64,000 nucleotides of DNA from Thalia democratica (Eukaryota), in contig OZ241828.1 in assembly GCA_965202585.1 (NCBI GenBank), positions 46,004,001 through 46,068,000 on the forward strand, read 5' to 3'. Below the pieces are notes generated by a model, which was given only the letters and a program-made list of their open reading frames with translations, was not told the origin of the DNA and ran no database searches. A program made the position numbers and the translations under genes. Each line of letters starts with the position of its first letter. Position 1 is the stretch's first letter. This document shows positions 4,784 through 61,249 of the stretch, one piece after another.

Positions 4784-5441
4784 GGGCATAGGGGGGTTAA
4801 CACCCATTTTTGGTTTTTGATCTTATTTTATACAGTTTTTACTAAGCTACAAAATGCTTTTTACAGATATAAAAAAATCAAAATAACTTTTTAGATATAG
4901 TCAGTCAAAGTCGGAGGCAACAATAGGTTCCTTATGGGAGGCGCAAACTAAAACTGCGAAAATAGACTATTACACTAAAAACTATCTTCATCTACGTTTT
5001 TTGAGATAACTACTTCAAATTTTCAGGAAATGTTCCTTGATATATTTAGAAAATTCTGTTGAAAATAATTTTAAAAAAATAAAAAATTTATATAAAAAAT
5101 AAACAAAAAAACATTTTTTTTTGGTTTTTTTTGTTATAAAATTTTAATTTTTTTAAATTCTGTTCCAACAGAATTTTTTAAATATTGCAAGGAACATTTC
5201 CTGAAAATTTGAGGTAGTTATCTCAAAAAACGTAGGAGGGATAGATTTTAGGGATTTCTAGTTATTTGCTGTTTTAGTTTGCGCCTCCCATAAGGATCCT
5301 ATTGTTGCCTCCGACTTTGACTGGCTATATCTCAAAAATTATTTTGAATTTTTAAAATCTGTAAAAAGCATCTTGTAGCTTAGTAAAAACTATATAAAAT
5401 AAGATCAAAAACCAAAAAAAGGTGTTAATCCCCCTATGCCC
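4784..5441. mobile_element. Kolobok-like non-autonomous DNA transposon (TTAA TSD), nearly fully palindromic
   Basis: TTAA|GGGCATAGGGGG...CCCCCTATGCCC|TTAA (TTAA at 4780-4783 and 5442-5445). The left and right halves are reverse complements over most of the length. A TTAA TSD with GG termini fits Kolobok rather than piggyBac (CCC termini). Confidence 0.75.
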
Positions 5442-7084: not shown

Positions 7085-7575
7085 GAAGGAATCATTTTTA
7101 AATCACTCATTTCACACTTTGATCTTATTTTATAGAGTTTTAACCAAGCTTCAAGTTGATTTTTACAGTCAACCTAATTTAACCTGTTGAAAAAATTTGT
7201 CAAAACAAAATTAAAAAATAAAAGTTTTATGATATAAAAACAAAAAAAAAGTTTTTTTGGTTAGTTTTTTTATCATAAATATATGTTTTTTTAATTTCCA
7301 ACAGAATTTTCTAAATATTACAAGAAACATTTCCTAGAAGTTTGAGCTAGTTATCTCAAAAAACGTAACAGGAGAACATTTTTTAGTGATTTGTAGTTAT
7401 TTCCTGCTTTAGTTTGCGCCCCCCATAAGGAACCTATTGTAGTCTCCAACTTACACCTCCTATATCTCAAAAATTATTTTGAATTTTAAAAATCTGTAAA
7501 AAGCAACTTGTAGCAGAGTTAAAACTCTATAAAATAAGACTAAATTGTGAAAAAGTGATACACCCCCCTATGCCC
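7085..7575. mobile_element. Partial or diverged copy of the same Kolobok-like family
   Basis: Right end CCCCCCTATGCCC|TTAA at 7563-7579. The internal sequence matches 5040-5440. The left TIR is degraded, so the left boundary is approximate. Confidence 0.65.
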
Positions 7576-8195: not shown

Positions 8196-8240
8196 GACTG
8201 ATACCTTTGTTTAGTCATTATTAGGACTCATCATTCAGTC
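8196..8240 (-). ncRNA. Degenerate type I hammerhead ribozyme relic
   Basis: Minus strand reads GACTGA-ATGATGA-GTCC-TAATAA-TGAC-TAA-ACAAAGGT-A-TCAGTC. Stem I is intact but the core is mutated (C3, G12). Confidence 0.55.
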
Positions 8241-8678: not shown

Positions 8679-8721
8679 GACTGGCTGATGAGTCCTAATA
8701 AAGACAAAACTGGTCTTAGTC
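8679..8721 (+). ncRNA. Degenerate type I hammerhead ribozyme relic
   Basis: GACTGG-CTGATGA-GTCC-TAATAA-AGAC-AAA-ACTGGT-C-TTAGTC. CUGAUGA is intact, GAAA is mutated to AAAA, and stem II has one mismatch. Confidence 0.65.
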
Positions 8722-23008: not shown

Positions 23009-23712
23009 GGCCATAGGGGGGGGGGGGGGGTAATCCATGTTTTTTACAAGTTGATCTTATTATAAAGAGTTTTTTCTAAGCTTGAAGATGCTTTTTATCG
23101 TTTTAATAAATTCAAATTATTTTTTGAGATATGACTAGTCAAAGTCGGGCCGCATAATAGGTTCCCTATGGAAAGAGAAAACTAAAACAGCGAAAAAAGA
23201 CTATTTTGTTTAAAATCTATCTCCTCCTACATTTTTCAAGCAATCTTCTTCAAACTTTCACAGTCTAATCTTTATACAATAAAAAAAAAACGTTACTTTG
23301 GAATTTAAAAAAAAATTGTAAAAATATTGTTTTTTTGAAAAAAAAACGATATTTTTTTAAATTTTTGTGATAAAATTTTTACTTTTTTACATTATTAAAA
23401 TTCTAAAGTAACTTTTTTTTCTTTTAATATAAGGAACATTTTCTGAAAATTTGAAGAAGATTTCTTAAAAAATGAAGGAGGAGATAGATTTTTAGTGAAT
23501 TTTTAAATTTTAGAGAAAATTGACCCCAAAAAATTTGCGGTCCATACGTTTGTATCGGAGACTTTTTATAAAAAATAAAATATCTCAAAAGTTAAATGAT
23601 ATTTTTGAATTCTATAAAAACAGGCTTGTAGTTTGTATTTAAAGCTTTCATATAAAAGACAAAGTTAATTTTTGTAAAAAAAAATGTCGGACCCCCCCCC
23701 CCCCCTATGGCC
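23009..23712. mobile_element. Kolobok-like non-autonomous element (TTAA TSD)
   Basis: TTAA|GGCCATAGGGGG...CCCCCTATGGCC|TTAA. Close copy of 53549-54243, in the same orientation. Confidence 0.8.
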
Positions 23713-38100: not shown

Positions 38101-41100
38101 TAAAGTATACACAGATAACTTGTGTTCATGTTTATAAACCGTTATATTTTGAAAGGTACAGATATTTTAAAAAATATATACATCGTTACATCATGCTTTC
38201 GTAAAATGTGTCTGTCTTATCTACTATTAACAAATCAGAATTAATTTGTTTATAGTTCATGCATTTAAACTACGAAAACTTAAAAAAAAAGTATATAAAG
38301 ATATCAAAATCAGTTTTACTTACTTAAAATACTTAATAAATAAAAATTGTATTAAGTTTAAAGCCGATGTTCTATTCTTAAAATTAATAAACAAACTTTG
38401 CTTATAAGAACATATTAAACTATCTAATACATTTTTTTTGAATAAAAAAAAATTGGCATCAAAGAAACTTAGAAGATAATTAGGATTGAAGTTAATTAAT
38501 TGTTTATGAATTTTAAGTAAGAGTATAAGTAATGACAAAGAAAATTAGTAAAACTGAAAAAAAAAATTCCATGCAAACAACCTGGAAAACTCATTTCTTC
38601 ACCATCTTGTTTTTTACGCATCAACTTATCCTTGAGTGCCTGACGTACAGGCGCTAGATTTTTGCGAATGATTACAATTAATAAAAATTTATAGAATGCA
38701 ACAAAGGTATAATAAAAAAAGCTCGTTTGACAAATTAATTCAAACGAAATTAACTGCTTTACTGACTATATTTTTTTTAATTAAAAGTTTTAAATACTTT
38801 TTTTGTCATACTACTAAAAAAATATAAATTAAAATTTACCTAAAATCAAGCAATTTACATAGATGTCTAAAAGTTTTAGTTTTAAATTTTTCCCATAAAA
38901 TTGTTTAGGTATTACTTTAATATTTTCGAAACAAAATATAATATATCATAGTATTGTGCTCAAAATTTTAACTTTTTATTTTTAAAACACAATTTGAAAG
39001 TAAGGTTAGAATACGCACTTAATTTTAGTTTTAATGATAAGATATTAACTTATTAAAGAACAGTTTCCACCCTTTTAAATAATAATAGCTAGTTATATAA
39101 AAAAGCCTGACTTAAGCAAAGTTTCAAAATATAGTTTTTTTATAAAAACGGGGAAAACAAAAACTTTAAGAAAACAGAAAAAAAACTTTCCAATATAATT
39201 TATAAGTTTTGATTATTACAAGTATTTATAAAAAAATAATAAAACAGCAAAACTCAATTAGTATATTAAAATTGAAAGCAATTGAGCTAAAAAAAATTTT
39301 TAAGTTAGATATTTTTCTAAATCAAATAAAAAAATTAAATTGAAAATATTGTGCTAATAAGATGAAAAAATAATTTGTAGTAAAAAGTTTTGATCATACA
39401 ATTTAGATCATCAGACCACAGGCCCGGTAGACTGAAACTCAAACTTAGCGATTAGCCGTGCAACGTTTATCACATTGTTTAAACAGCAAGACAGCTGGTT
39501 CGCTCGTTTAATACGATTAAATAAAACATTAGCAACAGTCTCAGATGTACCAGTTGTTTTGTCAAGTGGACAATGTTAAAACGTTGCACGGCAATTTGAA
39601 AAGTCTGACCAACTTGTTTTTAAGAAATTTCTTCCAGGTTTTTGAAAGTACATGTTTTTGGGTTTATTTTTAGTTTAAAGTTAAGTTTAAGGTTAAAAAT
39701 TGTGTTAAGTAATAATAACATTGTAAAGATACTGTAAAGCTACTTTAAATCACTTTAAAGTAAAGTTTTTAAATTAAAAAAGTTTTTGATGATGACAATT
39801 TTTTTAATCTATATGATTAATTTTTCGTGTCGAATTAAGATTTTACTACTAAAGAAGTAAAACTTATTTAAAAATTTAGTTTTATAATGATTTTTGTTCA
39901 AAATTCAAGTTTTTTTTCAAATTTTCTCAAATTCCAAGTTTTTTAACATAAAGTGTCAAACTCCAGGTTTTTCCAGGATTCTAGGGACATCCTGCACTGA
40001 AGTAAACGGTAGCTTCATGGTAAAACATCATAAACTGTTTGTAGATTAACGACTGTAGTAATAAAAACGAAACCCGGCCTCAGTCTCCCGAAAGCTTGTG
40101 GTCTAATGATCGAAGTAGTCTGTTCAAAACTTTTTATTAGCTTTAGCTAATCTCACGGCACACGAAAGTCCAGACTTCGGCTATGTTAGACTTAGGCTCA
40201 TGTTTTTCTTTTTTGTAATAGATGTTTAGAATATTAGTTTTTAACAATGTTAGATACTAAACTTCGGAACTGAATTAACTTTTCATTTAACTTTTTACTT
40301 GTGGAAACAGCTCAGAGGTAATAGCAAATACAATGTTATTTGGAAAAAACCTAAAGCAAACTTAAACTTGATAAAAATTCATTGTGATGTAATTAAAAAG
40401 ACTGTAGTATATAGTTTCTGCTAATAAAGAATAAATAACTAATAGAATAAATGAACTAGTGAACCAGTACCCTAAGGAATCTTTTAAGTTAATTTTTAGT
40501 AATTTTTATTTAGTTTATTTATTTGTTGACCTTGTGTAATAATCTTTTTATTTTCTTATTAACCAACTTTTAAAAACTCATCCCTATTTCTAAAACAAAT
40601 ACAACTACTTTTTATAAATTTAAAACTTGATAAAAAACAAGCTAAAGTTTTACTTAACTTTTTTTCATTTCTCAAAAAGTTTTAGGTAGTTGTATATTTA
40701 TATATATAACTTTTGTAGGCTTTTTTTAATCTTGTGTTTAGTAAATGTATTTGTATTGTACTAAAGCATTTTGTTTGTTACATTTTTTAAAATCATTTAT
40801 TATCTTTTTTTTTGTTTGTTTTGTAGTGTTATTTTATTCTAAGTAGCTGTATTTCAACAAAACGGTCTTACTTAGAGTAAGTTTAATAAAAGTTATTTGT
40901 ATATTAGTTTTATTAATTGATAATAAATAGCGAACTTCACAACACGGCCAGCAACAACAGTATCCGAGATAACATACGACCGGTTTAGTCATTATTAGAA
41001 ATCATAAAGTAGGCATAATCGCAGGAAACCGCCATTTATGACTAAGCAAGCGGGGTAAAGTACAGGGGTTGGTGTCAGAATGACACAGCAACAAAATGAC

Positions 41101-44100
41101 ACGGTGCGTCACTTTGGCACGGCGACAAAATGACACGGTGCGTCACTTTGGCACAGCGACAAAATGACACGGTGCGTCACTTAGGCACGGTGCGTCACTA
41201 TAGCATGGATTAACTAACTTATAAGCAAAACTAAACTTCTTCAAAACTAAACATACAAATAATTATTTGTTGTTTATTAAGCACAGCTTTTAAGCACACC
41301 TAACACCTTACTACTGCTTAAAAATGAGTATGTTGTTTATAAGTACGACGGTGGACAATAGAAGGTATAAACATTACGTGTTTCACTTTATTTTATGAAG
41401 TCACAATCAAAAATTAGTTTTTGTTTTTAATTTTGTTTCTTTGTTTTTAAAGTTAATCAATGTGATTGTTGCTGATTCTACAAAACCGGTTAGAAGACAG
41501 GAAACCGAAAAGTGTCCTAGAAAAATAAGATCGTTGTCCATACCAATGAAGATTAAAGTTTCACAACAAATCCTTCCCTCCTTTATTAACCACCGTGTCA
41601 TTTTGTCGCTGTGCCAAAGTGACGTACCGTGTCTTTTTGTCGCTGTACCAAAGTGACGCACCGTGTAATTTTGTCGCCGTGCATAAGTGACGCACCGTGT
41701 AATTTTGTCTCCGTACCAAACTGACGCATCGTGCCAAGGTGACGCACCGTGTCATTTTGTCGTTGTGCCAAAGTGACGCACCGTGTCTATTTGACGACTA
41801 TGAAAGCTGTGTCATTCTTACCCGCTCCCAAAGTACAGAAGTACTGAAGGGAAAGTTGAAGAAAAAAATTATTGATGGCAAGTAACATCTCAACTTTGTT
41901 GATGATAGCAGAAATAAATACTGGTTTTATTAATTAAGTACTTTTCAAGATTTTTCTTTTTCTTGTAATAAAATTTTAGTTTTTAACTTCTAAAAAATAA
42001 GTTAAAATTTACAAAATTAATATTAAAAATATATAACAAAAAGAAGTCCTCCTAAGAGTTATTAAGACGTTTTAGTCTTAAACTAACAATCCGAAAAAGT
42101 AATTTGATTTCAATTTTTTTTAAACAAAATAAAAAGCTGCAACTAACTCAAATATTTCATTTAAAATATATGGTGTTTAACTTTTAACCAAAATTTTAAC
42201 AGTAAAACTGCTGTTACTTTCGTTTTATACATCAAAAAACCTTTAAATATATTTTTCTCAGACAATAGCTTTAACATATTGTTGCTAAATAAAATAATTT
42301 CTAGTTCTGGTAAAAGGTAAATACTTTAAATAATTACCTTTATGGGCAAAAAAAGCTAAGGTATGTTAAGGGTATGGAGGAATCCACATTGTTTTTTTAC
42401 AAGTTGATCTTATCTTGTAGCGTTTTATCCAAGCTTTCAGATATTTTTGACCACTTAACAATATTTAAAGTAACTTTTGAGACATCACAATCGAAATCCG
42501 TCAGTTAACTAGGTTTCTTATGAAAGGTGGCGCAAACCAAAAAGACAAAAATATTTTTTTTTCTCTAAACTATATAAAGAATATTTTCTGGAAGTCAAAC
42601 GTCTCTATCTCAAATATATAAAGAAGATGGGTTTTTTTAAATTTCTGAGAAAACTTGTGTTGAACCATTTGCGGTTCATACATATGTATCGGAAGCTTTT
42701 TACAAAAATTACTATTGCTCTAAAGTTGAAAATTATCTTACTTCAATTAAAACTGTCTAAAGCTTTCATATACGAGCAAATGTTATTTTTATAAAAAAAT
42801 CCCATACTCCCTTCCGCCCCATTCCCTTAAAGCAGAAACATGATTGTAGATAATTTAAAACAAAATATAATTAAACAAACTAGATTTACAAAACAAATAT
42901 GTGCCACTCGTTAGGTAATCCAATGCCCTTGAACAATCATAAAAAATGTTTTTTATCTGTCGCCGGACATCTTTGCAACCAGAGCTGAAGATCCTGTAGT
43001 GCCTTGTTGCAAATAGGACAAATCTATCTAAGAGGCTTTAGAGACCGTCCACCTTTTTACTTTTCAATACGTAAGTTTACAAATAGAGTTTGATCTCCTT
43101 TTTTTTATCTGACATTCACCTTTTGAAGTTGTACATACTACAAACTTGCCGTTCTTTCATTTTGGATAGGTTGATCTTAGACTTTTGTGCAGTTTATACA
43201 TTGCGGTTACTTACTTTTAGAAGAAGCCTTTTTGTAAACAGAGTTAGCTATTTAATTTCCTAATATTTTGCTGCGATTTAAAATTTATTGAATGTTTACA
43301 ATTTCAGTTACCTTTTAGTATAAACAGGGCTGCCAAGCTTTTTAGTGAATTTTATTAAGGTTTTCTGAACTTTTTCAGGTTTAAAAAACATACTTTTGGT
43401 CCATTTTTATTATAAAATAAATTTAAGTATAAAACACTGTTATAACAACATTGAAAATATACTGTAAATGTGTTTTAAATCAAAAAAAAATTTAACGATA
43501 CTACTAAATTTTTTTTATCTTGATGGTAGAATTTTTGTATCTAATCAAAATTTTGTTAGTTTACATGTAGAAATGGTTTAAAATTCCAAGTTTTTCCAGA
43601 TTTTTTAGTGATATTTGTTCACAATTCCAGGTTTTTTTTTCTCAAATTCCAGGTATTTTGGCAACCCTGTATAAGCCATTGAGTAGGCTAAAATAAAATT
43701 AATATAAGAACAATTAATAATGATTTGGTGTCCGTAAACATGGTAGCTGGATAAATTAACGGCACACCCGATTGCCTCAAATTCGTAATCTCCTTTTATT
43801 TCTCCCAAAAGCATTAGAAGTGGGCACGTTATTCGCCGTATGTTTTTTTTTACACCTCAGGCAAAAGCTAATTCTTCTAGTGACCTTAAATTCATACAAT
43901 ATGCAGACAAATGCTGAGCCGTCAGTGTAGACTTTAAAGCCAAAATCATTAGCTGTATACCTCAATTGCGTTCGGTATGGATTTTATAGGGTATGAAAAT
44001 GGTATTGTTGTCGGGGTTTATTGAGTGGGTGCTTAATTGTAAGTATTAAATGAATAATACTTAATATGTAATTTTTTTATTACAAAATTATAAGTGCAAT

Positions 44101-47100: not shown

Positions 47101-49750
47101 GAAAAAGGACCTACGAAAATATACTAACAAAAAGGCTTCATCAAAAAACAAGTTAGTTTATTTTAAGTTACTTCGTTCATGTAACACTACAGGGTTTCCA
47201 CAGTATAACTTAGTGAACTTATGTTTAACTCAGGACAGTTTAAAGTTATTTTTTAAAATCAGGATGTCCCAAGTTTTATTAAAATTTTTGACTTTTTGAA
47301 ATTTTGAAAAGTTAGTTAAATTTTTTTAGGTATTTAAAAAAAATCAGAATTACTTAAGACAGTTTAAAAGGTCACTAACGGCATTTTTTTACTCAAAGAG
47401 TGGCAACCGCTTGTCTGTTTCTGTCTCAAAAAACAACATAAGCTTCTAGGAGTTCCTTGATTAGGAAAGAACTTGAAAAAAATTTACGGCGAAACATCTG
47501 TAATAAAGTATTGGGTCTTCTTCAAGAATAAAACTGTGTAAACTGCATTGATGGTATGGATTTTGACACTTCCAACTCTAATATAGGGAAACACAAAGGT
47601 GTTTGTATGACATTTCAAAAAAGTCTTGGTAAGCCAATCCAATATTTTTGCTAGCTTGCAAACATCATGTACTAGAGCTGCTACTAAATAACGTTTTTAG
47701 TTTTTAAGCCATAGAAAAATCAAAAATATCAGAGATAGTAATCTTCAAAAAATTCAAGAATCATTGGCAAAATATTTTGCAACACTTTGATATAAATTAT
47801 GTTTTGAATTTAGAAGTTGCTTCTAAAATTCGTTAAAATTATCAAAATTTACAATTGCCTTGTCTGCTTGATGATTATAAAGTAGTTGTCAAACTAGCCT
47901 TAAGTTACATTGGACTTCTGCCCTCGCAAGGTTTTACTCCTCAACGTCCTCGAGCTGTTTCTAAAGCTAGATGGACGAGCTAGGTAACTTACGTTCTTAA
48001 AATAGTTTTGCTTTCACAATAGAACTCATTAAAAACTATTTCAGACACCTTTTGTTAAGAAATACTGAAACGATTTGTTGATTTTTGCATAAATTGCTAC
48101 CTTTCCCCCTGGATCAATTGTACTGTGGCTTTAGCAGCTCCTGGCAACGACTTGGATTTGTTAATTACACTTCAAAAATACAAAAGTACTGATAAGTTAT
48201 GTGCAACCTCTGCGTTAAGTTTGATGAAAAAGCATCTTTGGTATCTTGTTGAAGAACTAGTTCCTTTGATGATCATACCAGTCAAAGCTAAGGTTTCTGA
48301 TGCTTTAAATCATCAAATAAATCAGGATAGGCACCAAACATTTAGGAAAAACAATGAGTTACCTATTCGTCCTGTCTGGTTTAATGAGAAACGAGATTTA
48401 GCAGACTTTGTTGGAAATAATTCCATGCTTTTATTTTTAAATCCTAGACTGCAGTCATTCTTTTCTTATTAATCCACCAGAACAATGGACTAGCGACAAA
48501 GATTAATTAGATACAAAAGAAACAGTAAATTACATAAGTGTAGTCAATGACGCTGCCGAACGAAGTGTTAAATTGTTCAGCAATTTTGTAACGAGAAATG
48601 AAGACACATATCAAGGCAATCTACAAACTATCGAGGAGGATAGGTAGCAAGTACCAAACCTCAGAATCATGAATAGAAACAAAATATTGTAATTTGTTTT
48701 ATTTCGATTTTAATCAAAAAATTCAACTCTTAACAAATATTTGTGGTTAATGTATTTTTCTAAAAGTGATAAAATTTTAATAAATATCTAATTTCTTTTT
48801 AAATAACTAATAATATATTCTAAAAGTTATTTTGTTAAAGAAAAAAAAAACGACCTTTTCCAAATACACCAATATAAAGCAAGCTTTTCAAAAGTGCTCT
48901 GCTCTAACAGGCTTATAGCTAGGAAGCTATTTTTTTGTGCTGTCTATTTACGGCATTTGCCACATACAAAAAAATAAGCTAAACAAAATTGAAAAAAATA
49001 AATTTTTGAGGGGCAACAGATGCATCTTAGTGGGCAAGAAAGAACTAGCAAAAACAATTGATTTATTAAGTTTAAATAAAACTTTCTGCCATAAATATTG
49101 TGCAGAATCGAACATTGTACCTTGTTTAATTTAAAGGTATAAAGGGAGCTAAGAGATCTAAAATATAAAGAGCAAAGCTATAGCGTTCAATAGGTTCTTT
49201 ATAAAAGGCACAAACAAAAAATTCATAAATATCAACTTTATACAAAGAATACTTTCTTCCATATTTCAAAAAATTTAATTTAAAACTATAATAAAAAATA
49301 TTTTACTATATATATATATATAACTTATTAAAATGACGATTTTAAAAATGCCGGAACATATGTTTAATAAAGACAAAAAAGATTGTCTCTAATCTTCAGC
49401 CAGTTCAAATTTAAAATAAAAAGCAATTTGGTAAACAAAGATGCAAAAGTTTACAAAAAAACAAAAACAATATGACGTAAGAATTTAGCTATTGCTAAAC
49501 TTTTTTAACTTTCATTTGTGTATTTTGTTTTGTGCTTTATTTTAAACTTGTTTTGAAGCTGATGAGTGCATAGGCACAAAACTCGAGTCCTTTGAGTTTT
49601 GCATCTTTAAAAAAACTATTTATATATATATATAAAGATGTAAAACTCGAGTCCTTTGAGTTTTACATCTTTAAATAAACCTTTTTATTAATTAAGCCCT
49701 TAAGGTGGGCTCAGTGTGAAAGATTTAATTTATCAAGTTAAATAACTTAG

Positions 49751-49781
<31 letters not shown>

Positions 49782-52700
49782 CACTCATAAAACTTAATAG
49801 ATAAAACTAACTGTACAATAAGAAAACATTCTAAACTAAACCAATGGAAAAATACAGATAAAGTGATCAACTGGTTCGAAAAATCAACAAAAACTACAGA
49901 TTCATAAAATTCGAAATCACTAAATTTTACCCAAGTATAACTACATATAATTTAATTAAAGCATTAGAATTCGCTGAACAATTTTACCCAATAACAGACA
50001 AAGAAATGAATCTAATAATACACTCTTGTAAAGCAATTTTAACACATAAAAATCAAACCTGGGAAAAAGTAAGTTCAAACTAGTTATTTAATGTAAGTGT
50101 GGGATCATTTAACGGGGCAGAAATAAGCGATTTAATAGGGTTATTTTTACTGAATGAAATTAAAAAAAGTAAGATTTTTACAGAGAATGAATTCGGATTA
50201 TATAGAGATGACGGACTAGGTATAATAAGAAACAAATCACCGAGATCAGCAGAAAAAACTGCTAAATATTTAATTAAATTATTTAAACAAAACGGCTTTA
50301 AAGTAACAATAGAATCCGGATTATTCCAAACATATTTTTTAGATGTATTCTTCAACATATTAAACTGAAGTTACCGACCTTACAATAAACCAAACTCACC
50401 AAATTTATACATTAACAACAACTCCAATCACCCCCGACTACCCGAAATAATAAACAGAGACTAATAAAACTTTCTAATAATAAAAAATCTTTTAACAAAG
50501 TAAAAAGTGAATACCAAAAAGCATTAATTTCAGCCATTTACAAAGATACCTTAAAATACAAAAAAACCTCCATCTAAAAGAAATAAAAGACAAAGAAATA
50601 GAGACAAAATATTTTTCAACCCACCGTTTAGTCTAGTGTTTGTTCTAAAATAGGCAATCAACTTTTAAATCTGATTACCACATTCTTCGATGAAAGCCAT
50701 CCATGTAACAAAATATTCAACTGCAACACAATTAAAATATCATTCAGTTGTACAAGTAATTTTAGAAGCAAAATAATATCACACAACAATAAAATATTTA
50801 AATAAAACAATATAAACGATAAAAGCAACACAAAAGATAAAATTTGCAATAGCCGCAAAGAACCTTGCCCTTCAAACAATCAATGCCTAGTTTCAAACAT
50901 GATATATAGAGCAACAATAACATCTAATAAAACAACCAAAGAGTACTTAAGATCTACAGGAAATATTTTCAAACAAAGATATAGGAATCACAAATCTTCA
51001 TTCAACAACATTAACAAAAGACATACAACAGAACTGGCAAACTATATTTGGAATTAAAAAGATAACAACAGATACTATAAAATTAAATGGGAAATACTAC
51101 GAAGGAAAAAATCAAAATTCAATACTAAATTTGGCTGCAAACTTTGAAACTTACAAAAAATAGAAATTGATAAATTAGGCAAGAACATAACACTAAACAA
51201 CAAAAGAGAAAGACAAAATATATGCATTCATAACCAAAAATACTTTTTTAGCAAAACTAAAACTAACTAAATATTAAATCAAAGTAAAATTAAGCCGGGA
51301 ACACGAATAGTTTAAAACATTTTTGTTATACAGTTTAAAACATTTTTCTAATACAACCTTTCCAAACTTTTCAAAATGCATAAATTCTTAAACTAACAAG
51401 ATCAGCGTATTTTTTCAAACTTAACTTACTGTACAAAAAACCTTCATTATTACTACATTATGATAAATATAAAATTTTGAAATTTTTAATTTCTGTTAAA
51501 CACTGTTAATAAAATTTAGCTTTACTGATGAGGTCGTATAAACCTATTTTTTTTATATAATCAAATGAAGAAATATGTATATTGTTAGTTCAAAACACAC
51601 AACAAATTTACTATATTATAAACTTTTCAACTTTTGTAATTTTGAGTTATAATATGCGTAACTAAACGAAAATGCGTTAACAAAATAGTGAGTAGATTTG
51701 TGAAAGGTGACTGTACTAAAGTTTTACAACTATATAGCATTTGAAATAATAAAAAAATCGTTGTCCTTACAAAACGTTAGTAGAACTAGTTTATTACAGT
51801 AGTTTTTAAACAGAAAAAAACTTTAAATTCTAATTTTGTTATGTCAGGTAAGTAAGTTTTTAATTCAGTAAGTATCAGGTTTAGTTAGAGATAGTCAAGT
51901 AAATATAATATCTCTTAAATTAAAAAAAAAACGGAAAAAAAAGGTAAAGTACTACAAAATAACCTTAAATAGAGTATAGTTTTTATATTTAACTGTATAT
52001 TAGGCATAAATATCAATAATTTGGGTACAAAAAATGTACCTTATCAACAAAAGCTTCTGATCTTCGGTCCTTTTCCCGAGACATGCTCGAAGCCTCGCCT
52101 TTTAGGCGTTTAAAACTGTCAAGAATGTCTAAACCAAACTTTCCGTGTTCATAAGGCAAGTAAAAGCACTCGGCTAGAACATGCAAATCATTTACAGTCA
52201 CAGGTTCATAATCTTCATCATTGTGGGAAACAGGCTGCTGAGGAGTTGAAGGACCTGAATCCGTAAGTGCTTCCATTACAATATCGTTGCTAGCTGCGTT
52301 ATTAAGGCAGCTACCGGCCACGGAGTTGTTTGTTGCTGTAGTTTCAATAGAAATGTTGTCATCGTTGGCATTATGAACTTGTAAGTTGTCGTCTGTTTGC
52401 ATCGTGAAATCTACAGTATACTGACTAGAAATTTCATGATCGGTGTCAATCTGAAACATATTTAAAATGCTAGATAAGCATAACATGAAAAACTTTATAG
52501 ACACAACTATTTATGAAAAAACTAAGAGTAATAAGCTTACTAAGTATGTACTTAAAGTTCGTAAGTATATTGAACTAATATTTCTATTGTAATACATTTT
52601 TATAATATCTGGACAATAAAAAAAAACAATTATTTAAAACTGTTTTATCTGGTGATTAAAGAAGCTTTAAATATAGATCAACTTAAACCTGCATAATTTT

Positions 52701-55700
52701 TGTATCATCTTCTTTAGAGTCAGAACTCATTGATGATGTCATTACATCTTTCATTGCGACATCGTCATCTGCAACCTTTTTGTTTTTTAAACTGTCTTTA
52801 ACTGATTTTTTTCTTTTGCATTCTATTTCTTTCATAATGTTGCTGGAATAACTAGTATGCTGAACTTGAGAAGAAGCGAGTGGAGTTGCGAAACAAGTGA
52901 TAGGAGCAACAGATGACTGCAGAGCACATTGAGTACTGACCAAAGGAGAAGGTAAAGATGGTATAGACCCACTGCGAGGAACAAACTTAGTTTCAATATG
53001 TCGGGTTTGGTTAAATACGGGTAACCAATCGTGTAATGCCTACAAGATAAAAAATACGTAGTTCAAACATTACATATACTCACGTTTGCAAAACTTAATT
53101 CATATTTTGAAGGAATGTAATTTACTTTGGAATAAATATTAGCAGTTATAAAATAATAAACAATGAACTTTACCGCAAGATCAACAACAACAGCATCCGA
53201 GACAATCCTACGACCGGTTTCGTCCTTATTAGGACTCATCAGGCAGGAATAGTCGCGAGAAACCGCTATTGTGATCTTAAACAAGCGGGCTTAAGTACAA
53301 TGCACTGAAGCGACCGTTTGTGGGTAAAGTTGAAAAAATGACACAGCTTAATCATTCACAGCTCAACGTCTCAGACATTGTCAGCTTGTTGTGAGATTAT
53401 AGTCTGCGCTCGTTTGATCAGTTTTAGCCAGTATTTATTTCGGCCATCATCAACAAGTTGAGATGTTTGTTGATGATGGCCAAACATCTCAACTTGTTGA
53501 TGATGGCCGAAATAAATACTGGCAGTTATAAAATAAAAGGGTATTTAAGGCCATAGGGGGGGGGGGGGGGGGTAATCCATGTTTTTTACAAGTTGATCTG
53601 ATTTTATAGAATTTTTTCTAAGCTTCAAGATGCTTTTTATCGTTTTCAAAAATTCGAGTTAATTTTTGAGATATGAACAGTCATAGTCGGGCCGCATAAT
53701 AGGTTCCCTATGGGAAGGGAAAACTGAAACAGCGAAAAAAGACTATTTCATTTGAAATCTATCTCCTCCTACATTTTTCAAGTAATCTTCTTCAAACTTT
53801 CACAGTCTAATCTTTATACAATAACAAAAAAAAGTTACTTTAGAACTAAAATTTTTTTTTGTAAAATTTTTTTTTTGAAAAAAAAACTTTTTTTTTTGTG
53901 ATAAAATTTTTATTTTTTTAAATTACTAAAACTCTTAAAGTAACGTTAAATTTTTCTTTTATTATAAAGAAAGTCTCCTATAAATTTGAAGAAGATTGCT
54001 TGAAAAATGAAGGAGGAGATAGATTTTTAGTCAATTTAAAATTTCCGAGAAAATTGACCCCGAAAAATTTGCGGTCCATACGTTTATATCGGAAAATTTT
54101 TACAAAAAATTAAATATCTCAAAAGTTAAATGATATCTTTGAATTCTATAAAAACTGGCTTGTAGTTTGTACTTAAAGCTTTCATATAAAGACCAAAGTT
54201 AATTTTTGTAAAAAAAAAAAAAAGTTAGACCCCCCCTATGGCCTTAAAGTAAATACTGGTTATGTTTAAAATAGTAATATGACACAAAAAATTAATTAAG
54301 CGAAATGAAACTATAAAAGTTTAGACTTATCTAAATGAATACAAATGGCAAAACTTTAAAAGCTTAGATAATCAGCCAAAAAATCATACATTATGGTTGT
54401 TTATTTCATTACCTTGCTGAAAGCTTCATTTGGACAATAATTTCCATGAATAAAACTTGATGTAGATTGATTTATACCATGACTTCCATGTGAAGAGTAA
54501 TCGCTGTCATCATCTGATACCGTAGAAGAACTACTTTGTTGTATTTCTTCCGAGCTTTCCATTTTTTCAACTTCTATTTTATAAGCTTTTGTTAGTGATA
54601 TACCGGATCCTAATTAAAAAAAAAAGAATCGGAACCGGATCCAGTTAGTTTGGAAAGACTTTATTTTCAGCGCGCGGTCAACTTCTTTCAGTTTTATATA
54701 CTTATATTATTGTGTTTTTAATATTTATATAAAATTAGTCAAGCGAAACAGACTAATTTAAGTTGAAGTAATTCAACTATTTGTTGTAAACATACAGGTA
54801 CATACATCTATATAACTAAAAATTATAGTTGTCGTGAGACTGGTAAAGTGGTCAAGTTCCTCTAGTACCGCTTAATAAACCTTAAGCTCAACTACACAAA
54901 AAGGATGTTCTCAAAATTTTTTGTTGTTCTATCTCCATTTAAATCGGAAACAAGTACAAACACTCACGAAAGTGAGCAACAAGATTCAGTTGATCAAGAG
55001 ATTGAGACAGAATTTTTTTTTTGGCTGAAAAAAAAATTATCTGCTGAAGAAGTTAAAGTCTTGTCTTGGTGGAACTCAAACAAGAAAGTTACACACATCT
55101 TGCTAGGTTTGCAAGAAGGTATCTTTTAGCACCACCATCTTCTGTTTATTCTGAAAGGTTAATTTTAGAAGCTGGTAACTTGTACGAACAAAAGCGAAGC
55201 CGATTGTTTCCAAAAACTATCGAAATACTTTTATATCTTCATAACAACTTGAAAAAATAGAATATGTTTCTTTGTAGCTTGGCGTTGATATGAGTAAATG
55301 TTGTTTACTAAACTACTTACTTTTATATATGTAAACATAAACAGTTGCTAAAGAAGTTATTGTTAATCCTATAGTTCGAAATTTTATAAATAAAAGTATA
55401 ATGTAAAAGCTAACATAATTAAAATTAATTAAGTTCGTTATTTTGTAAAGCATTGTTTTTTTTTCATTTACGTCATACAAAGTACAAAATTCAAGTTTAG
55501 TCGTACAAGTAGCTTGAAATTTAACATTTAACTGAGATTTCATATGAGCAGATTTTTTTTGTTACAACGTTCTTTTTCTTAGTTTTAAAAAACAATATTT
55601 AGACCATAATTTTGTGTTTTTTTTAACAAATGTTTGTATTAAACAATTTTTACTAATTAATGATATTATAATAACTAAACTTTATAAGTTAGTTCTCCAT

Positions 55701-58700: not shown

Positions 58701-61249
58701 AAGCTTATACGATAGTCTTCAACTGTATGTTTAAATTTGGACTTTTTTAAGAACTCCTGATTATTTTCAACACAATATATTTTTGAGACATACGGTTTAA
58801 CAGTTGTATCCAATAGCTTTGATAATGTTTGTATAGATATGTTTAAAGTTGTAACAATTGGTCTCTCAGTGAGTAGTTACTTTATTTACTTAACAAACAC
58901 CAAATTACAACCACATATTTACCTGTTTAGGCATACTTTGATAAAAAGAAATACACAATTCAAAAAACTAATAAAACAAAATTTTAAATTATTTATGAAC
59001 ACAGGGTTGCCTGTCTTTGGTCAAAAAATCTTCCCTGAGTGACTAGAAACTTCTCTGAGTAACTTTAAACTTCACTGAGTTTCCCTAAGCTTATTTTTAA
59101 ATCCTTAAAAATTTTGTTATTTATAAAAAAGTACAATGTTAGTTCTATGAATATTGAAGAACTAGCCGAAAGGCTTAAAATTTTCTGAAAAAGCACTGAA
59201 AAATAAATAAAAATAACTGTTTTTGAACAAAATTTTGAAACTGGACCAACTAAATCTCATTCTAGATCTAGAAAAAAAACTTTCCCTGAGATTTTTTAAA
59301 AAAACTTAAAATTTCCCTGAAATTTTTAGAAAAAACCAAAACTGCCCTGAGTTTCCCTGAGTTTAAAAAAAAGAATCAAAATTCCCTGAGTCTCCCTGAG
59401 ATTTTCTATAACTTGAAAATTCCCTGAGTTTCCCTGAAATCCCTGAGTGTGTGGCAACCCTGTAAACACAAAGAGTTTCCCTGAGTTTAAAAAAAAGAAT
59501 CAAAATTCCCTGAGTCTCCCTGAGATTTTCTATAACTTGAAAATTCCATGAGTTTCCCTGAAATCCCTGAGTGTGTGGCAACCCTGTAAACACAAAGAAA
59601 TTCAATACATTGATGATATGTGGTGATAATTAAGTAGTAAAATTAGCGATACATGTAAAGTACACTAAGATAAATACTCATTTAGATTAATATCAAATAT
59701 TTTTTATGTAATAAAAATAAAGACAATAAAATAAAAACAATTTGCGCAGTACTTTTCTTTATTGAACTGACATATGTTTCTGTGCGTTAAACAAGTAAAC
59801 ACACTTCAACGAAGTTCTTTGAAAAATTAAATAAAGTTGCAAGACAAGAATAGAAGATAAAGTAGGTTTGTAAAATACAAACATTCAAAAAATAATACAA
59901 AAAAACTATTTAAAAAAGTTACAAAAGTAAGTTTTGGTGTTTATAAATGTGTTAAATTACAGCTGAAAACTAAAAATAGTTAGAAAAGATTTATTAACAA
60001 CTTATAAAGAATTATTAATTGTCATTACTTAACAACACTTTAACTTTTTTACTTTTCTTTACATTAAGATTTATTAAGTATCACTGTTATATCTAATTTT
60101 TTTTTAAACTATTTTAACAAACTTTGTTTTTTTTTATCTGTAGATTTCCACCAAGTTGAAAGTGTGTGAAGAGCGACAAAGTTACTTTCAAACTCACAAT
60201 TAGGATTAGTCAATACACCATTTAAGTATGGTTTTAACTCTGTCGATCTTCCTACAAATATTATATTAACATGTACTTATAACAACAATTTTTCATTATA
60301 GCTAAAATTATGGTACCTTTTTTGTTAAGTAAAAAAAAATACCTTTGTAAGGCCCGAGGAAAACCCTTTTAGGATCATAATCGTTAGCATGAAGATTATC
60401 CCAGACCATAGTTTTCCGTTTCAAAACTTTATTTAGTTGCTTAATTGAATCAACAGTTATGATATTCGAAACTACTTTCGGACCTTTTAATTTATACAAA
60501 TTCTAGATGTTTTAACATAGTAATGTAGTTAGACTCTAACTTGGATCTATAGAAGTACATACTAAAGACTTAAGGAGTACTGAAAAAACTATTATTTTCA
60601 CAATAAGTTAACATTTGTTCCATTTTAAAGTTAAATTTGAAAGCTTAGGAATTAAAGAATCGAAAACTAAATCTCAGAGGTTTGCATAAAATATACAAAA
60701 TATTTAAAAATAGAAAATATAACTAAGAAGTTTATAGCTTTCAATAAATTAAAAATTTTAAAGTATTGTTAGACGAGATATATAGGGATTACAAAATTTG
60801 CTTAAATAGTCGTCTTTGTAAGAAAATAATTAAAAGACTTAGTTAGTAAAAAAACATTATAAATAAGAGAATTTAATACTGTTGCAAAACATTTAGTGAG
60901 ATTAACAAACTGATCAACGAACTATAGATAAAACTGATTTTGTTAGTGGATATAAGAAATATCTATTATTATAACCAAATATTCAAATAAGCAACTTATA
61001 ATATACCACATATTACATATACCTATGTATTCTGTGTAAAAAAAATAACTTTCACATATTTTAAAATAACTATAAAACCTGTAATATACGATAGAAATTT
61101 TTTTTTATTAATATACAAAAAATAATAATTGTCATGTGCTTAAGACTAACCAGTCCACATAACTGAAATTTCTGGATGAAGTTCTTTACCTAATGTCAAC
61201 AGATACTGGGAATTTTCAACATTAGGATTAGCCATTGTGCGACAATATT
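28984..61249 (-). CDS. OGA: O-GlcNAcase (protein O-GlcNAc hydrolase, GH84 plus pseudo-HAT domain); gene span in this window, 13 exons, 5' exons outside the window
   Basis: The hand-assembled 13 exons total 2315 nt in a continuous frame with GT-AG introns. Motifs [37 protein letters not shown] and LGRAF* match recalled human OGA/MGEA5. Confidence 0.95.
30180..30503. mobile_element. hAT-type MITE in the last OGA intron
   Basis: TIR TAGGGGTGGGTAA / TTGTCTACCCCTA. The 8-bp TSD copies CTCTACAC and CTCTAAAC match at 7/8. Confidence 0.75.
30793..30964 (-). CDS. OGA: OGA exon (KAIKLL...QYPSLLTL...[11 protein letters not shown])
   Basis: Acceptor tttattcag, donor A|GTAAGT, 172 nt. Matches human FPSLIKM...MMACLLSSLKAN. 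Confidence 0.92.
31364..31568 (-). CDS. OGA: OGA exon ([26 protein letters not shown]...SAVK)
   Basis: Acceptor ttattttag, donor AAA|GTATTC, 205 nt. Matches human [25 protein letters not shown]. Confidence 0.92.
32647..32732 (-). CDS. OGA: OGA exon (SLLTEVC...KQLPGD)
   Basis: Acceptor ttaattacag, donor TT|GTTAGT, 86 nt. Phases fit both neighbouring exons. Confidence 0.85.
34411..35479. mobile_element. hAT-type non-autonomous element, 1069 bp, perfect 8-bp TSD
   Basis: ATTGATAA at 34403-34410 and 35480-35487. The 16-bp TIR is CAG(G/T)GGCGTAGCGTGG. Confidence 0.85.
35573..35677 (-). CDS. OGA: OGA exon ([12 protein letters not shown]...[12 protein letters not shown])
   Basis: Acceptor ttttacag, donor GAG|GTTTGT, 105 nt. 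Matches human RLLPIDGANDLF...YTIRPYFPKDE. Confidence 0.92.
35752..35831 (-). CDS. OGA: OGA exon ([27 protein letters not shown])
   Basis: Acceptor tttaaacag, donor CAA|GTACAT, 80 nt. Matches human DQEPWAFRGGLAGEFQ. Confidence 0.93.
37084..37700 (-). mobile_element. 5'-truncated Penelope-like element (GIY-YIG C-terminus plus 3' hammerhead relic)
   Basis: ORF 37272-37610: [17 protein letters not shown]...LSNYIWELK...LKWEIL...[11 protein letters not shown]. The relic GGTT-CTGAAGA-TATGTACTAAACATT-GAA-ACTTAGT-A-AACG lies at 37084-37124. Confidence 0.75.
40930..41930 (-). mobile_element. Decayed copy of the small hammerhead-bearing element seen at 53160-53523, split by a MITE
   Basis: 40930-41065 and 41839-41930 align by eye with 53160-53305 and 53290-53523. 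A mutated hammerhead lies at 40973-41013 (CCTAC-TTTATGA-TTTC-TAATAA-TGAC-TAA-ACCGGT-C-GTATG). Confidence 0.65.
41066..41829. mobile_element. Foldback/MULE-like MITE with 33-bp subterminal tandem repeats, perfect 9-bp TSD
   Basis: AAAGTACAG at 41057-41065 and 41830-41838. TIR is GGG(N6)GT(C/A)AGAATGACACAGC. Arrays of ACAAAATGACACGGTGCGTCACTTTGGCACGGCG occur in opposite orientations at the two ends. Confidence 0.85.
42370..42826. mobile_element. Diverged Kolobok-like element (TTAA TSD)
   Basis: TTAA|GGGTATGG...CCCCATTCCC|TTAA. The internal sequence resembles 23009-23712. Confidence 0.65.
43325..43669. mobile_element. CAGGG(T/C)TGCCA-type (hAT-like) MITE
   Basis: CAGGGCTGCCAA...TTGGCAACCCTG. 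Related fragments occur at ~8850-9050, ~21359-21480, ~39630-39995 and ~56750-57128. Confidence 0.6.
45589..45763 (-). CDS. OGA: OGA exon ([11 protein letters not shown]...[27 protein letters not shown])
   Basis: Acceptor tttttaag, donor G|GTTTGT, 175 nt. Matches human EEWRSRAAKF...[27 protein letters not shown]. Confidence 0.93.
46596..49029 (+). mobile_element. Decayed 2.4-kb hAT-superfamily (hATm-like) transposon with long TIRs
   Basis: TIR TAGGGTGCATTTGTTGCCCC matches the reverse complement of 49010-49029, extending ~140 bp imperfectly. Broken transposase frames give [18 protein letters not shown]...[17 protein letters not shown]...[12 protein letters not shown] and [15 protein letters not shown] is degraded; the subgroup call is from memory. 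Confidence 0.65.
49555..49593 (+). ncRNA. Type I minimal hammerhead with a single core substitution (G12A)
   Basis: GAAG-CTGATGA-GTGC-ATAG-GCAC-AAA-ACTCGAGT-C-CTTT. All three stems pair; only GAAA is changed to AAAA. Confidence 0.7.
49754..49779. repeat. (TA)13 microsatellite at the 5' junction of a Penelope-like element
   Basis: Direct read. Shorter TA runs also occur at ~49308-49322 and ~49621-49634. Confidence 0.9.
49780..51545 (+). mobile_element. 5'-truncated, frameshifted Penelope-like retroelement (RT plus GIY-YIG)
   Basis: RT: [15 protein letters not shown]...[17 protein letters not shown]: [12 protein letters not shown]...[18 protein letters not shown] remnant CTGATGAGGTC lies near 51525. 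Confidence 0.85.
52040..52450 (-). CDS. OGA: OGA exon (IDTDHEI...[22 protein letters not shown]...AFVDK)
   Basis: Acceptor atgtttcag, donor AAG|GTACAT, 411 nt. Matches human [22 protein letters not shown]. Confidence 0.93.
52689..53039 (-). CDS. OGA: OGA exon (ALHDWLPVF...KIMQ), stalk and disordered region
   Basis: Acceptor tatcttgtag, donor CAG|GTTTAA, 351 nt open frame. ALHDWL ~ human ALTEWL. Confidence 0.85.
53207..53247 (-). ncRNA. Intact type I minimal hammerhead ribozyme
   Basis: Minus strand: CCTGC-CTGATGA-GTCC-TAATAA-GGAC-GAA-ACCGGT-C^GTAGG. Full CUGAUGA/GAAA core, 5-bp stem I, 4-bp stem II, palindromic stem III, GUC cleavage triplet. Confidence 0.9.
53427..53523. repeat. Perfect inverted repeat, 43-bp arms, 11-nt loop
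   Basis: 53427-53469 is the exact reverse complement of 53481-53523. The loop is TTGATGATGGC. Confidence 0.95.
53549..54243. mobile_element. Kolobok-like non-autonomous element (TTAA TSD) in an OGA intron
   Basis: TTAA|GGCCATAGGGG...CCCCCTATGGCC|TTAA. Close copy of 23009-23712. Confidence 0.8.
54413..54585 (-). CDS. OGA: OGA exon ([11 protein letters not shown]...[11 protein letters not shown])
   Basis: Acceptor acaaaag, donor AAG|GTAATG, 173 nt. Phases fit both neighbours; YCPNEAF ~ human YSPQMAL. Confidence 0.8.
54593..55783 (+). mobile_element. Internally deleted hAT transposon (C-terminal dimerisation-domain relic)
   Basis: TIR TAGTGAT(A/C)TACCGGATCC. TSD copies GCTTTTGT (54585-54592) and GCATTTGT (55784-55791). 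Frames give LSWWNSN...[34 protein letters not shown]. Confidence 0.85.
56296..56369. repeat. Exact 37-bp tandem duplication
   Basis: CGCAACTTCTGAGACATATTTTAAATTTTGTTTTCAG occurs twice. Confidence 0.9.
57290..57560 (-). mobile_element. LTR-retrotransposon gag N-terminal relic
   Basis: [14 protein letters not shown]...[21 protein letters not shown]...LFQCAQEKL. Recalled similarity to invertebrate gag N-termini. Confidence 0.45.
57600..58830 (-). mobile_element. Decayed Penelope-like RT/GIY-YIG relic
   Basis: [19 protein letters not shown] (RT SFDVxSLF motif), followed by broken RT and endonuclease frames. Boundaries are approximate. Confidence 0.55.
59002..59586. mobile_element. CAGGGTTGCC-type MITE rich in TCCCTGAG repeats, with a duplicated right end
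   Basis: CAGGGTTGCC at 59002; GGCAACCCTG ends at 59462 and again at 59586. Confidence 0.7.
60123..60251 (-). CDS. OGA: OGA exon ([35 protein letters not shown]...)
   Basis: Acceptor tatttgtag, donor A|GTTTGT, 129 nt. Close match to human [31 protein letters not shown]. Confidence 0.92.
60343..60483 (-). CDS. OGA: OGA exon (GPKVVS...[22 protein letters not shown]), GH84 active-site loop
   Basis: Acceptor attaaaag, donor G|GTATTT, 141 nt. Confidence 0.95.
61151..61249 (-). CDS. OGA: OGA exon ([11 protein letters not shown]...[11 protein letters not shown])
   Basis: Acceptor actatttag, donor G|GTTAGT, 99 nt. Matches human EYCGTFCYPNV...LLPGIEVLWTG. Confidence 0.93.

Follow-up and report, generated by a model that had tools for sequence, protein, structure and literature searches.

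Metazoan type I hammerhead ribozymes have a canonical architecture and depend on dimerisation (Cervera and de la Pena 2014, PMC4209133). Among the known carriers of such motifs, the metazoan non-LTR retrozymes, especially those of the newt satellite 2 / axolotl HHR_Amex1 type (PMC7229834), are one of the closest systems to the locus described here. These AT-rich elements of ~300 bp are arranged in tandem, and their target-site duplications (TSDs) exceed 4 bp (Cervera and de la Pena 2020, PMC7229834). A hammerhead monomer with a one-base-pair helix III and a palindromic tetraloop cleaves at 6% per hour, and dimers are efficient (PMC7229834). Retrozymes are regarded as Penelope derivatives that originate from pLTRs, and 42-44% of their copies in Xenopus are intronic (bioRxiv 10.64898/2026.07.22.740005). 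A Penelope protein assists its ribozyme in vitro (Mob DNA 2024, PMC11167929).

Intronic ribozymes of amniotes (HH9/HH10 and the HDV-like ribozyme of CPEB3, PMC10919898) represent another kind of system. They are single-copy, are deeply conserved at orthologous sites, and have either a stable helix III or a fold that is active in the monomer. Slow intronic ribozymes leave splicing unaffected (Fong 2009 and Dye 2006, cited in PMC10919898 and PMC2995048).

The hammerhead analyzed here lies in an intron of the OGA (O-GlcNAcase) gene, which is encoded by the minus strand of the window, i.e., of the whole 64-kb stretch of DNA under study. The gene is recognized by a Pfam match to NAGidase PF07555 at 60311-60499 (-) (4.9e-10) and by the FYLPYEHG stalk motif within the exon 52016-52504 (-). 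The intron is 1373 nt long, occupies positions 53039-54411 (-), and has GT..AG ends; its borders were determined from spliced RNA contigs of the runs X1 and X2 and from the splice-site sequences. It separates the upstream exon 54412-54573 (-), supported by RNA contig pieces and translation, from the downstream exon 52689-53038 (-), supported by RNA contig pieces and the open reading frame across exons.

The hammerhead itself occupies positions 53207-53247 (-) and is in sense orientation relative to OGA transcription. Read on the minus strand from 53247 to 53207, it is CCUGC-CUGAUGA-GUCC-UAAUAA-GGAC-GAA-A-CCGG-U-C/GUAGG, where the slash marks the predicted self-cleavage site. In hammerhead numbering the cut falls after C17 (53212) and before G1.1 (53211), which is 1200 nt into the intron and leaves 173 nt to the 3' splice site. 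The conserved core (C3 U4 G5 A6 N7 G8 A9, G12 A13 A14, A15.1-U16.1, H17) is complete at 53242-53212 (-), and its positions align to the consensus of the Rfam family HH9. Helix I has 6 bp once the U-A pair 53248/53206 is counted, and helix II consists of 4 bp capped by a 6-nt loop. In the monomer, helix III is reduced to one A-U pair that closes the palindromic CCGG loop; a length of 6 bp is reached solely in a dimer. An earlier note on this DNA, made from the letters only, had reported the same intact motif with the same sequence and cut site, and placed it in sense ~170 nt upstream of the 3' splice site of the OGA intron. Both statements hold, with the intron borders given above. It was also right to identify the motif as a type I hammerhead (Rfam clan CL00010) whose minimal helix III is palindromic; such motifs are carried by Penelope-type or retrozyme repeats and are known to cleave best as dimers.

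In E-value mode, Hammerhead_HH9 matches 53260-53189 (-) with 38.4 bits and an E-value of 3.5e-6 for the whole 64-kb window, and this is the sole Rfam hammerhead match in the window. With the Rfam gathering thresholds there are no matches in the window. The 38.4 bits fall short of the 52 set as the gathering score of HH9, a shortfall explained by the lack of a helix III loop. The box-stem-box pattern of the hammerhead was found twice in the window against 0.08 expected matches, and a 26-mer core with up to 3 mismatches was found three times against 0 expected. Looser hammerhead descriptors gave matches in the window at the level of shuffled sequences.

The earlier note also counted at least seven hammerhead-like motifs in the window and regarded the OGA-intron one as the only fully intact one. 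The latter is correct, but only five of the motifs are credible, the other four having mutated cores. An old degenerate copy of the same family was found by similarity search at 40920-41064 (-); it is 77% identical over 148 nt, its core is destroyed, and it includes a hammerhead motif with core mutations at 40952-41010 (-). A related hammerhead at 8681-8719 (+) has a mutated core in which the GAAA box reads CAAAAC, and another at 8209-8234 (-) has mutations in both core boxes. The motif at 49559-49589 (+) belongs to a different family, with the palindromic helix III CUCGAG and the substitution G12A, and is situated upstream of a Penelope-like remnant. This degenerate remnant at ~50.0-51.1 kb was recognized by eye; together with its motif (49.5-51.1 kb) it lies 2-3 kb from the insertion described below. 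A Pfam search with the Penelope-like ORF fragments at 50.1-51.1 kb gave no match. The OGA-intron hammerhead is unrelated in sequence to the motif of this remnant.

The OGA-intron hammerhead is a part of an ORF-less insertion of 365 bp (53157-53521, minus strand) bounded by an exact TSD. The 15-mer GCAGTTATAAAATAA is located at 53142-53156, on the 3' side of the element, and its exact second copy is located at 53522-53536, on the 5' side. The window contains just these two occurrences of the 15-mer, against 0 expected by chance, and the site is AT-rich. The GC content of the insertion is 41.6% versus 30% in the intron. Its sole open frame, of 73 aa, has no family match, and an ORF with reverse transcriptase and GIY-YIG is absent both within and beside 53157-53521. 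The RNA fold of the 315-nt element has z = -5.05.

The insertion consists of nearly one ~328-bp family unit and an inverted duplication at its 5' end. The repeat search revealed an inverted repeat at 53427-53523 with arms of 43 nt (53427-53469 and 53481-53523), 100% complementary and separated by a loop of 11 nt. The inner arm is family sequence, and the outer arm is its inverted duplicate at the 5' end of the element; family joints exit the unit at 53456. At the OGA locus the unit extends over ~53467-53157, with the cut site placed 55 nt short of its 3' end. Thus the insertion bears the marks of target-primed reverse transcription, namely the exact 15-nt TSD and the 5' inverted duplication. 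Both of its ends lie away from the position cut by the ribozyme, which fits copying of an uncleaved or circular RNA rather than of a linear RNA trimmed by the ribozyme. The combination of an exact TSD, a unit-length insert that ignores the cut site, and a 5' snap-back duplication may inform studies of insertion of retrozymes and Penelope-like elements.

Genomic contigs cover the insertion boundary. A contig of the DNA run X6 crosses from the flank into the element, up to 53175. The flank contigs of the DNA runs X7 and X8 end exactly at 53156, i.e., at the boundary between the TSD and the element, as might be expected if the site were empty on one of two chromosomes. Among the joints listed for X6, X7, and X8, none corresponds to an empty site.

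Sequences of the same family are very abundant in the genome. Word depth summed over the core is 1.1-1.7 million in X6, X7, and X8 against 57-88 for the single-copy flank, and for the remainder of the element it is 0.16-0.57 million; these sums are not copy numbers. We estimate the abundance of the family at ~10^3-10^4 copy-equivalents, and contigs at least 96% alike reach ~10^4 times the single-copy depth in the three DNA runs. All of the sequencing runs were used as assembled contigs. Joints between tandem units step back 304 nt plus ~24 further letters, i.e., ~328 nt, in the DNA runs X6, X7, and X8 and in the RNA run X1. The family is thereby present both as tandem ~328-bp units and as dispersed copies, and the OGA locus holds a solo unit with no tandem array. 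The unit joints in X1 also occur in DNA, so that circles and array transcripts are not separable by them. Summed depth of family RNA is from several-fold to 30-fold above that of OGA exons in the RNA runs X1, X2, and X9. Contigs have loose ends at 53212, 53207, and 53246, i.e., around the cut site and the motif borders. These loose ends are found in the DNA runs too and mark divergence between hammerhead families. A search for independent copies in metagenome contigs by a 19-nt pattern from the flank gave 15 loci, all of them chance matches of 19-29 nt to unrelated contigs, most of which are GC-rich.

The copy in OGA is close to the family consensus. In contigs at least 96% alike, the majority differs from it solely at 53349, with no differences within 53207-53247. 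In contigs at least 90% alike, there are ~4 majority differences in the 304-nt unit and 0 in the core. The hammerhead core of the OGA copy is thus the family consensus, and the loop of helix III does not vary within the consensus. At the rates observed for the flanks, the probability of zero changes in the 41-nt core is 0.54-0.86, so the intact core needs no selection.

These features assign the family to the metazoan non-LTR retrozyme / Penelope-derived class. So far as the literature could be checked, no earlier description of the family in this host, an AT-rich marine animal, was found. The OGA copy agrees with the newt satellite 2 / HHR_Amex1 type in the length of helix I (6 bp) and helix II (4 bp) and in a helix III of one base pair with a palindromic tetraloop. 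Like other non-LTR retrozymes, it is an ORF-less and comparatively AT-rich unit of ~330 bp (328 bp here, 150-450 bp in the class; GC of the insertion is 42%) with a strongly structured RNA. At the family level, tandem arrays together with dispersed monomers, a very high copy number, and presence in RNA are also shared. At 15 nt, the TSD exceeds the 4 bp typical of plant retrozymes, as in the class. Unlike these elements, the OGA locus holds one solitary unit, which has an inverted duplication on its 5' side and ends that lie off the cut site. Non-LTR retrozymes are expressed as unit-length linear and circular RNA; the present family is represented in RNA by its sequence and unit joints in X1 and by its sequence in X2 and X9.

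In the pLTR hammerheads of Penelope-like elements (PMC4209133, PMC11167929), helix III is likewise palindromic and minimal, which implies that they work as dimers. Insertion into an AT-rich site with a TSD is shared as well, and 5' rearrangement is frequent in Penelope-like elements. However, the OGA copy has canonical loops and helix sizes and is not a min-HHR, and it has no adjoining RT/GIY-YIG ORF. An autonomous Penelope-like element was considered and rejected, as no RT + GIY-YIG ORF flanked by pLTRs exists at the insertion.

With the amniote intronic ribozymes the locus has in common a sense motif of an apparently self-cleaving type in an intron of a protein-coding gene, and HH9 is the Rfam model that gives it the highest score. 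In contrast to them, the OGA copy is young, belongs to a family of ~10^4 copy-equivalents, has only one base pair in helix III, and stays under the gathering threshold of HH9. A conserved functional intronic ribozyme of the HH9/HH10 or CPEB3 type was rejected in view of the very high-copy family and the marks of a young insertion.

In the predicted minimum free energy structure of the monomer, C3, U4, and G5 are paired with the helix III loop, and the form with the open core is 4 kcal/mol less stable. A lone hammerhead monomer is thus predicted to adopt an inactive fold. The minimum free energy structure of the homodimer is the canonical double hammerhead, with a gain of just -3.7 kcal/mol by nearest-neighbour folding. 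The predicted Kd of pairing in trans is ~2.5 mM, and the dimer fraction would be from 1e-6 to 8e-4 at nM to uM RNA, in a model that omits loop-loop tertiary contacts, Mg2+, protein assistance, and a high local concentration of family RNA. Rfam and descriptor scans found no second hammerhead inside the OGA intron for dimerisation in cis.

Three RNA data sets (X1, X2, and X9) show normal removal of the intron. The splice joints 53038/54412 and 52450/52689 are present in X1 and X2 and also in X9, where one contig has a loose end at 53041 and resumes at 54415. RNA depth in X9 is 0 over the unique part of the intron, 53054-53131, against 76.9 on the exon. Spliced contigs prove that splicing occurs but say nothing on whether its amount is unaffected.

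Taken together, the data indicate with high probability that the OGA-intron hammerhead is a solo recent copy of an abundant non-coding hammerhead retroelement and is effectively neutral for OGA. A simple recent insertion, which the earlier note had kept as its null explanation, is favoured by the exact TSD, the perfect inverted duplication, and the near-consensus sequence. The mobilisation of the family can be outlined as follows. In transcripts of tandem arrays, neighbouring hammerheads would base-pair with each other by the palindromic CCGG loop, so that helix III grows to 6 bp. The paired hammerheads would excise unit-length RNAs, a tRNA ligase would circularise them, and a Penelope-type reverse transcriptase would copy them into new sites; for this family, both the circular RNA intermediates and the role of the Penelope reverse transcriptase are taken from the literature. 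The lone copy in OGA pre-mRNA would instead adopt a rod-like inactive form with C3-U4-G5 paired with the helix III loop. Having no partner in cis, it would show negligible cleavage on the time scale of splicing and would be removed and degraded together with the intron. A copy that is inactive, partnerless, and lost with the intron should therefore be effectively neutral for OGA. Penelope-related hammerhead mini-retroelements may form a visible share of animal genomes and scatter intact ribozymes into introns by chance. Where a genome has thousands of identical motifs, the presence of an intact one in some interesting gene should not be taken as evidence of regulation.

The earlier note had proposed a regulatory role, namely that cleavage of OGA pre-mRNA by the sense hammerhead, ~170 nt short of the 3' splice site, could compete with splicing, and that the need for a dimer would make it sensitive to transcript concentration. 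The core is indeed intact and in sense, its dimer is predicted to fold as the canonical active double hammerhead, and the HDV-like intronic ribozyme of Cpeb3, tuned against splicing (PMC10919898), provides a precedent. Nevertheless, we consider such competition very unlikely. The copy belongs to the young members of the family, and its core bears no trace of selection, as flanks and core are equally near the family consensus; it also has thousands of equivalents. The modelled Kd of ~2.5 mM would make pairing of two rare pre-mRNAs negligible, and the intron offers no second hammerhead. The 3' splice site follows only 173 nt later, while monomers with this helix III cleave at ~6% per hour (PMC7229834). 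Splicing is spared by slow intronic ribozymes (PMC10919898, PMC2995048). Finally, the intron is spliced, and no unique intron sequence is retained in X9. The regulatory proposal is therefore unsupported, and the OGA context would be interesting only if locus-specific cleavage were true.

The partner of the OGA copy could also come from elsewhere. Abundant linear or circular family RNAs could pair with it by the CCGG loop, complete helix III, and cause cleavage of pre-mRNAs that carry sense copies. If this were true, bursts of retroelement expression would reduce what OGA and other genes with sense copies produce, and the ribozyme would link transposon activity with host expression. The excess of family RNA over OGA exons in X1, X2, and X9 and the identity of the helix III loop across the family consensus are in line with such activation in trans, and retrozyme circular RNAs can form a large share of total RNA in mussel (PMC7229834). 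However, the predicted dimer fraction is below 0.1% even at micromolar RNA, and the structured monomer would bury the core and a part of the loop. Depth sums across thousands of loci are a poor guide to concentration, and the OGA intron is spliced normally. We regard this possibility as very unlikely, too.

The least probable of the explanations is that the perfect 43-bp hairpin at the 5' end of the element matters rather than the ribozyme, as dsRNA that feeds small-RNA or RNA-editing pathways or slows splicing: its arms are 100% complementary and weakly resemble the mir-3003 precursor in Rfam, but the score of 42.5 bits is well under the gathering score of 70, the hairpin is accounted for by the 5' inversion at insertion, and splicing is normal.

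A separate observation concerns the activity of monomers in related elements. Some invertebrate retrozyme hammerheads cleave well as monomers, at ~0.8 per min in coral, which by itself would speak against neutrality of solo copies, but these hammerheads have a longer helix III (PMC7229834).

In an intron of the O-GlcNAcase gene (OGA) we observed an intact hammerhead motif, the marks of an insertion, an abundant repeat family with tandem units, RNA of that family and a host intron that is spliced normally. These observations are best explained by an element of the non-LTR retrozyme type that inserted recently and is effectively neutral.

All parts of a hammerhead can be read on the minus strand at 53247-53207, as an earlier note claimed. 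The 5' strand of helix I (CCUGC) leads into the box CUGAUGA. Helix II (GUCC/GGAC, loop UAAUAA) is followed by GAA and then by an A-U pair around the palindromic loop CCGG. C17 is 53212, and the 3' strand of helix I (GUAGG) comes next; with an additional U-A pair (53248/53206) helix I has 6 bp. Self-cleavage is thereby predicted between 53212 and 53211, the position named earlier. A search of Rfam at gathering thresholds gave no match. In E-value mode the model Hammerhead_HH9 matched 53260-53189 of the minus strand with 38.4 bits (E-value 1.6e-7 on 3 kb, 3.5e-6 on the whole window), the sole hammerhead match in 64 kb. The score falls below the 52-bit threshold of the model because the helix III loop is missing. 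The box-stem-box pattern occurs twice (0.08 expected), and the 26-nt core occurs three times at no more than 3 mismatches (none expected). Chance does not explain the motif.

The motif lies in an insertion of 365 bp (53157-53521). An exact direct repeat of 15 nt, GCAGTTATAAAATAA (53142-53156 and 53522-53536), flanks the insertion and has no further occurrence in the window. The insertion's 5' end, read on the minus strand, has two 43-nt arms that are 100% complementary (53427-53469 and 53481-53523, 11-nt loop). The inner arm is family sequence and the outer arm its inverted duplicate, which is the kind of 5' inversion left by target-primed reverse transcription. The insertion has no noteworthy ORF, and its GC content is 42%, compared with 30% for the intron and 27% for the window. 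Compared with shuffled sequences, its 315-nt direct part has a much more stable fold (z = -5.05), and the hammerhead is placed within a long extended helix I. In length, the insert matches one repeat unit almost exactly, but its ends fall about 55 nt downstream of the predicted cut site rather than at it. Therefore its template was not a ribozyme-trimmed linear monomer; the ends fit copying of unprocessed RNA or of a circle. A Penelope element is reported to use mostly unprocessed RNA in vitro (PMC11167929). The insertion stands beside or within an older repeat (53531-53800), whose second copy (22994-23258) is 90% identical and whose weaker copies lie at 4817-5023, 5204-5408 and 7397-7554. On the minus strand this older repeat includes 16 consecutive C (about 53556-53571), and its depth in the DNA runs is very high as well.

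We compared contigs of three DNA runs (X6, X7 and X8) with the locus. Depth is 57-88 on the single-copy flank, and the summed depth of contigs at least 96% alike is 1.1-1.7 million across the hammerhead and 0.16-0.57 million across the remaining element. Near-identical family sequence thus amounts to the order of 10^3-10^4 copy-equivalents, depth sums not being copy numbers. In both DNA and RNA, joints recur that exit the unit at 53453-53456 and come back into it at 53152-53158 after 23-31 extra letters, so the family also forms head-to-tail arrays with a period of about 328 bp. Two of the five sampled 31-mers of 53110-53205 were found in more than 12 metagenomes of marine or seawater origin that stem from different studies, and also in a third named organism. 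Therefore either the host or the repeat family is widespread in marine samples. A search for independent family copies in metagenome contigs gave only chance matches.

The copy appears to be young. Among contigs at least 96% alike, the majority departs from it solely at 53349, and no variant reaches 10% within 53207-53247. Contigs at least 90% alike show about 4 majority differences in the 304-nt unit and none in the core. Given 1-4 differences in 263 flank positions, the probability of no change in 41 core positions is 0.54-0.86; therefore an intact core is what is expected of a young neutral copy. Flanks as near the consensus as the core are an outcome that the earlier note had named as refuting its regulatory reading. 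Together with an exact target-site duplication and an unblemished 43-bp inverted duplication, they favour its null explanation, a young neutral insertion. In X6 the flank contig continues 19 nt into the element. In X7 and X8 the single-copy flank contigs end exactly at the boundary 53156/53157, which is the pattern of a heterozygous empty site in a de Bruijn graph, and the insertion could be heterozygous there. A role of the 43-bp hairpin, rather than of the ribozyme, is very unlikely, its perfect arms also being of the type left by reverse transcription.

The host gene is on the minus strand. An exon-sized ORF (60311-60499) matches the NAGidase domain (PF07555, 4.9e-10), an FYLPYEHG stalk motif lies in the exon 52016-52504, and a single reading frame runs through the OGA exons. 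Spliced contigs from two marine metatranscriptome runs (X1 and X2) have joints 53038->54412 and 52450->52689, with GT..AG on the minus strand. A 3.6-kb contig of a further run, X9, departs from the window at 53041 and resumes with sequence at 54415; therefore X9 is RNA too, spliced as in X1 and X2. The intron (53039-54411, 1373 nt) thus carries the hammerhead in sense orientation, as had been claimed, with the predicted cut 1200 nt into the intron and 173 nt short of the 3' splice site. The next upstream OGA intron contains, antisense to the gene, the C-terminal dimerisation domain of a hAT transposase (PF05699, 1.3e-8; 55066-55257 of the plus strand).

The earlier note had suggested that cleavage could compete with splicing. 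Such competition by OGA-OGA dimers is very unlikely. Two copies are predicted to form the classic double hammerhead, in which helix III has 6 bp. Pairing brings a predicted ensemble gain of only -3.7 kcal/mol, which gives a predicted Kd of about 2.5 mM and a dimer fraction of 1e-6 at 1 nM and 8e-4 at 1 uM. There is no second hammerhead in the OGA intron for pairing in cis. In the minimum-energy fold of the motif alone, the loop of helix III pairs with the catalytic-box bases C3, U4 and G5, and the open-core conformation is predicted to be 4 kcal/mol less stable. Each of the three RNA sets shows the intron spliced, and X9 depth over its unique stretch 53054-53131 is 0 versus 76.9 on the exon. 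Activation of the intronic hammerhead in trans by abundant family RNA is also very unlikely; RNA of the family is observed, and the same weak predicted pairing and normal splicing apply. Contig ends at 53212, 53207 and 53246 were considered as RNA termini and rejected, since the same ends occur in the DNA runs. They are the points at which other hammerhead families, whose helix I sequences differ, diverge; the family of the copy at 8209-8234 is an example.

Canonical metazoan type I hammerheads have a helix I of 6 bp, a helix II of 4 bp and a helix III of 1-2 bp with a small palindromic loop, a design that prevents efficient cleavage in the monomer and permits it in tandem copies (PMC4209133). 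HHR_Amex1, the axolotl hammerhead of a 330-bp repeat, has a one-base-pair helix III and a palindromic tetraloop, as does the OGA-intron motif; its monomer cleaves 6% in an hour and its dimer efficiently (PMC7229834). PMC10919898 and PMC2995048 cite Fong et al. (2009) and Dye et al. (2006) for the finding that intronic ribozymes abort splicing only when fast, and that slow intronic hammerheads leave it unaffected. In the OGA transcript only 173 nt are synthesised between the predicted cut site and the 3' splice site. This literature fits the modelled folding of the OGA-intron motif.

For the preferred reading, a neutral retrozyme insertion, the element would be a non-autonomous, Penelope-related retroelement whose hammerhead acts in tandem-array transcripts and releases unit RNAs. 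As the literature suggests, cleavage in the arrays would proceed through dimers, tRNA ligase would circularise the units and a Penelope-type reverse transcriptase would copy the RNA. Circular RNA aside, the tested features that define metazoan non-LTR retrozymes are present in the element, which is not an autonomous Penelope-like element. Rfam models it best with HH9, yet the copy is unlike the conserved intronic ribozymes of amniotes, which are single-copy, ancient and active as monomers. An intronic location is common for retrozyme copies (42-44% in Xenopus; bioRxiv 10.64898/2026.07.22.740005). The class of element is already known, and the present one adds a marine-animal member; this particular copy gains interest only if locus-specific cleavage is true.

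The window holds five hammerhead-like motifs, including the intact one, instead of the seven or more counted before. The intact motif is indeed unique, as the other four have core mutations (49559-49589, plus strand, G12A; 8681-8719, plus; 8209-8234 and 40952-41010, minus). An old copy of the intact motif's family lies at 40900-41930 (minus strand) in a larger head-to-head arrangement, with a single hairpin arm (41873-41924) and two inverted blocks, each made of ~40-bp tandem repeats (about 41090-41230 and 41590-41800), flanking an unrelated centre. A degenerate Penelope-like remnant (within 49559-51100, plus strand) is interrupted by stops and frame changes and has no Pfam match at E 0.01. 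By eye, its translations contain two stretches, one of YRDDGL-type reverse transcriptase and one GIY-YIG-like. The G12A motif listed above stands about 500 nt upstream; it belongs to another hammerhead family and has CUCGAG as helix III. The longest ORF of the window (10361-11677, plus strand, 438 aa, single exon) resembles TOP6BL, a meiotic topoisomerase VI B-like protein (DUF4554, PF15091), by protein-language-model features (score 0.94).
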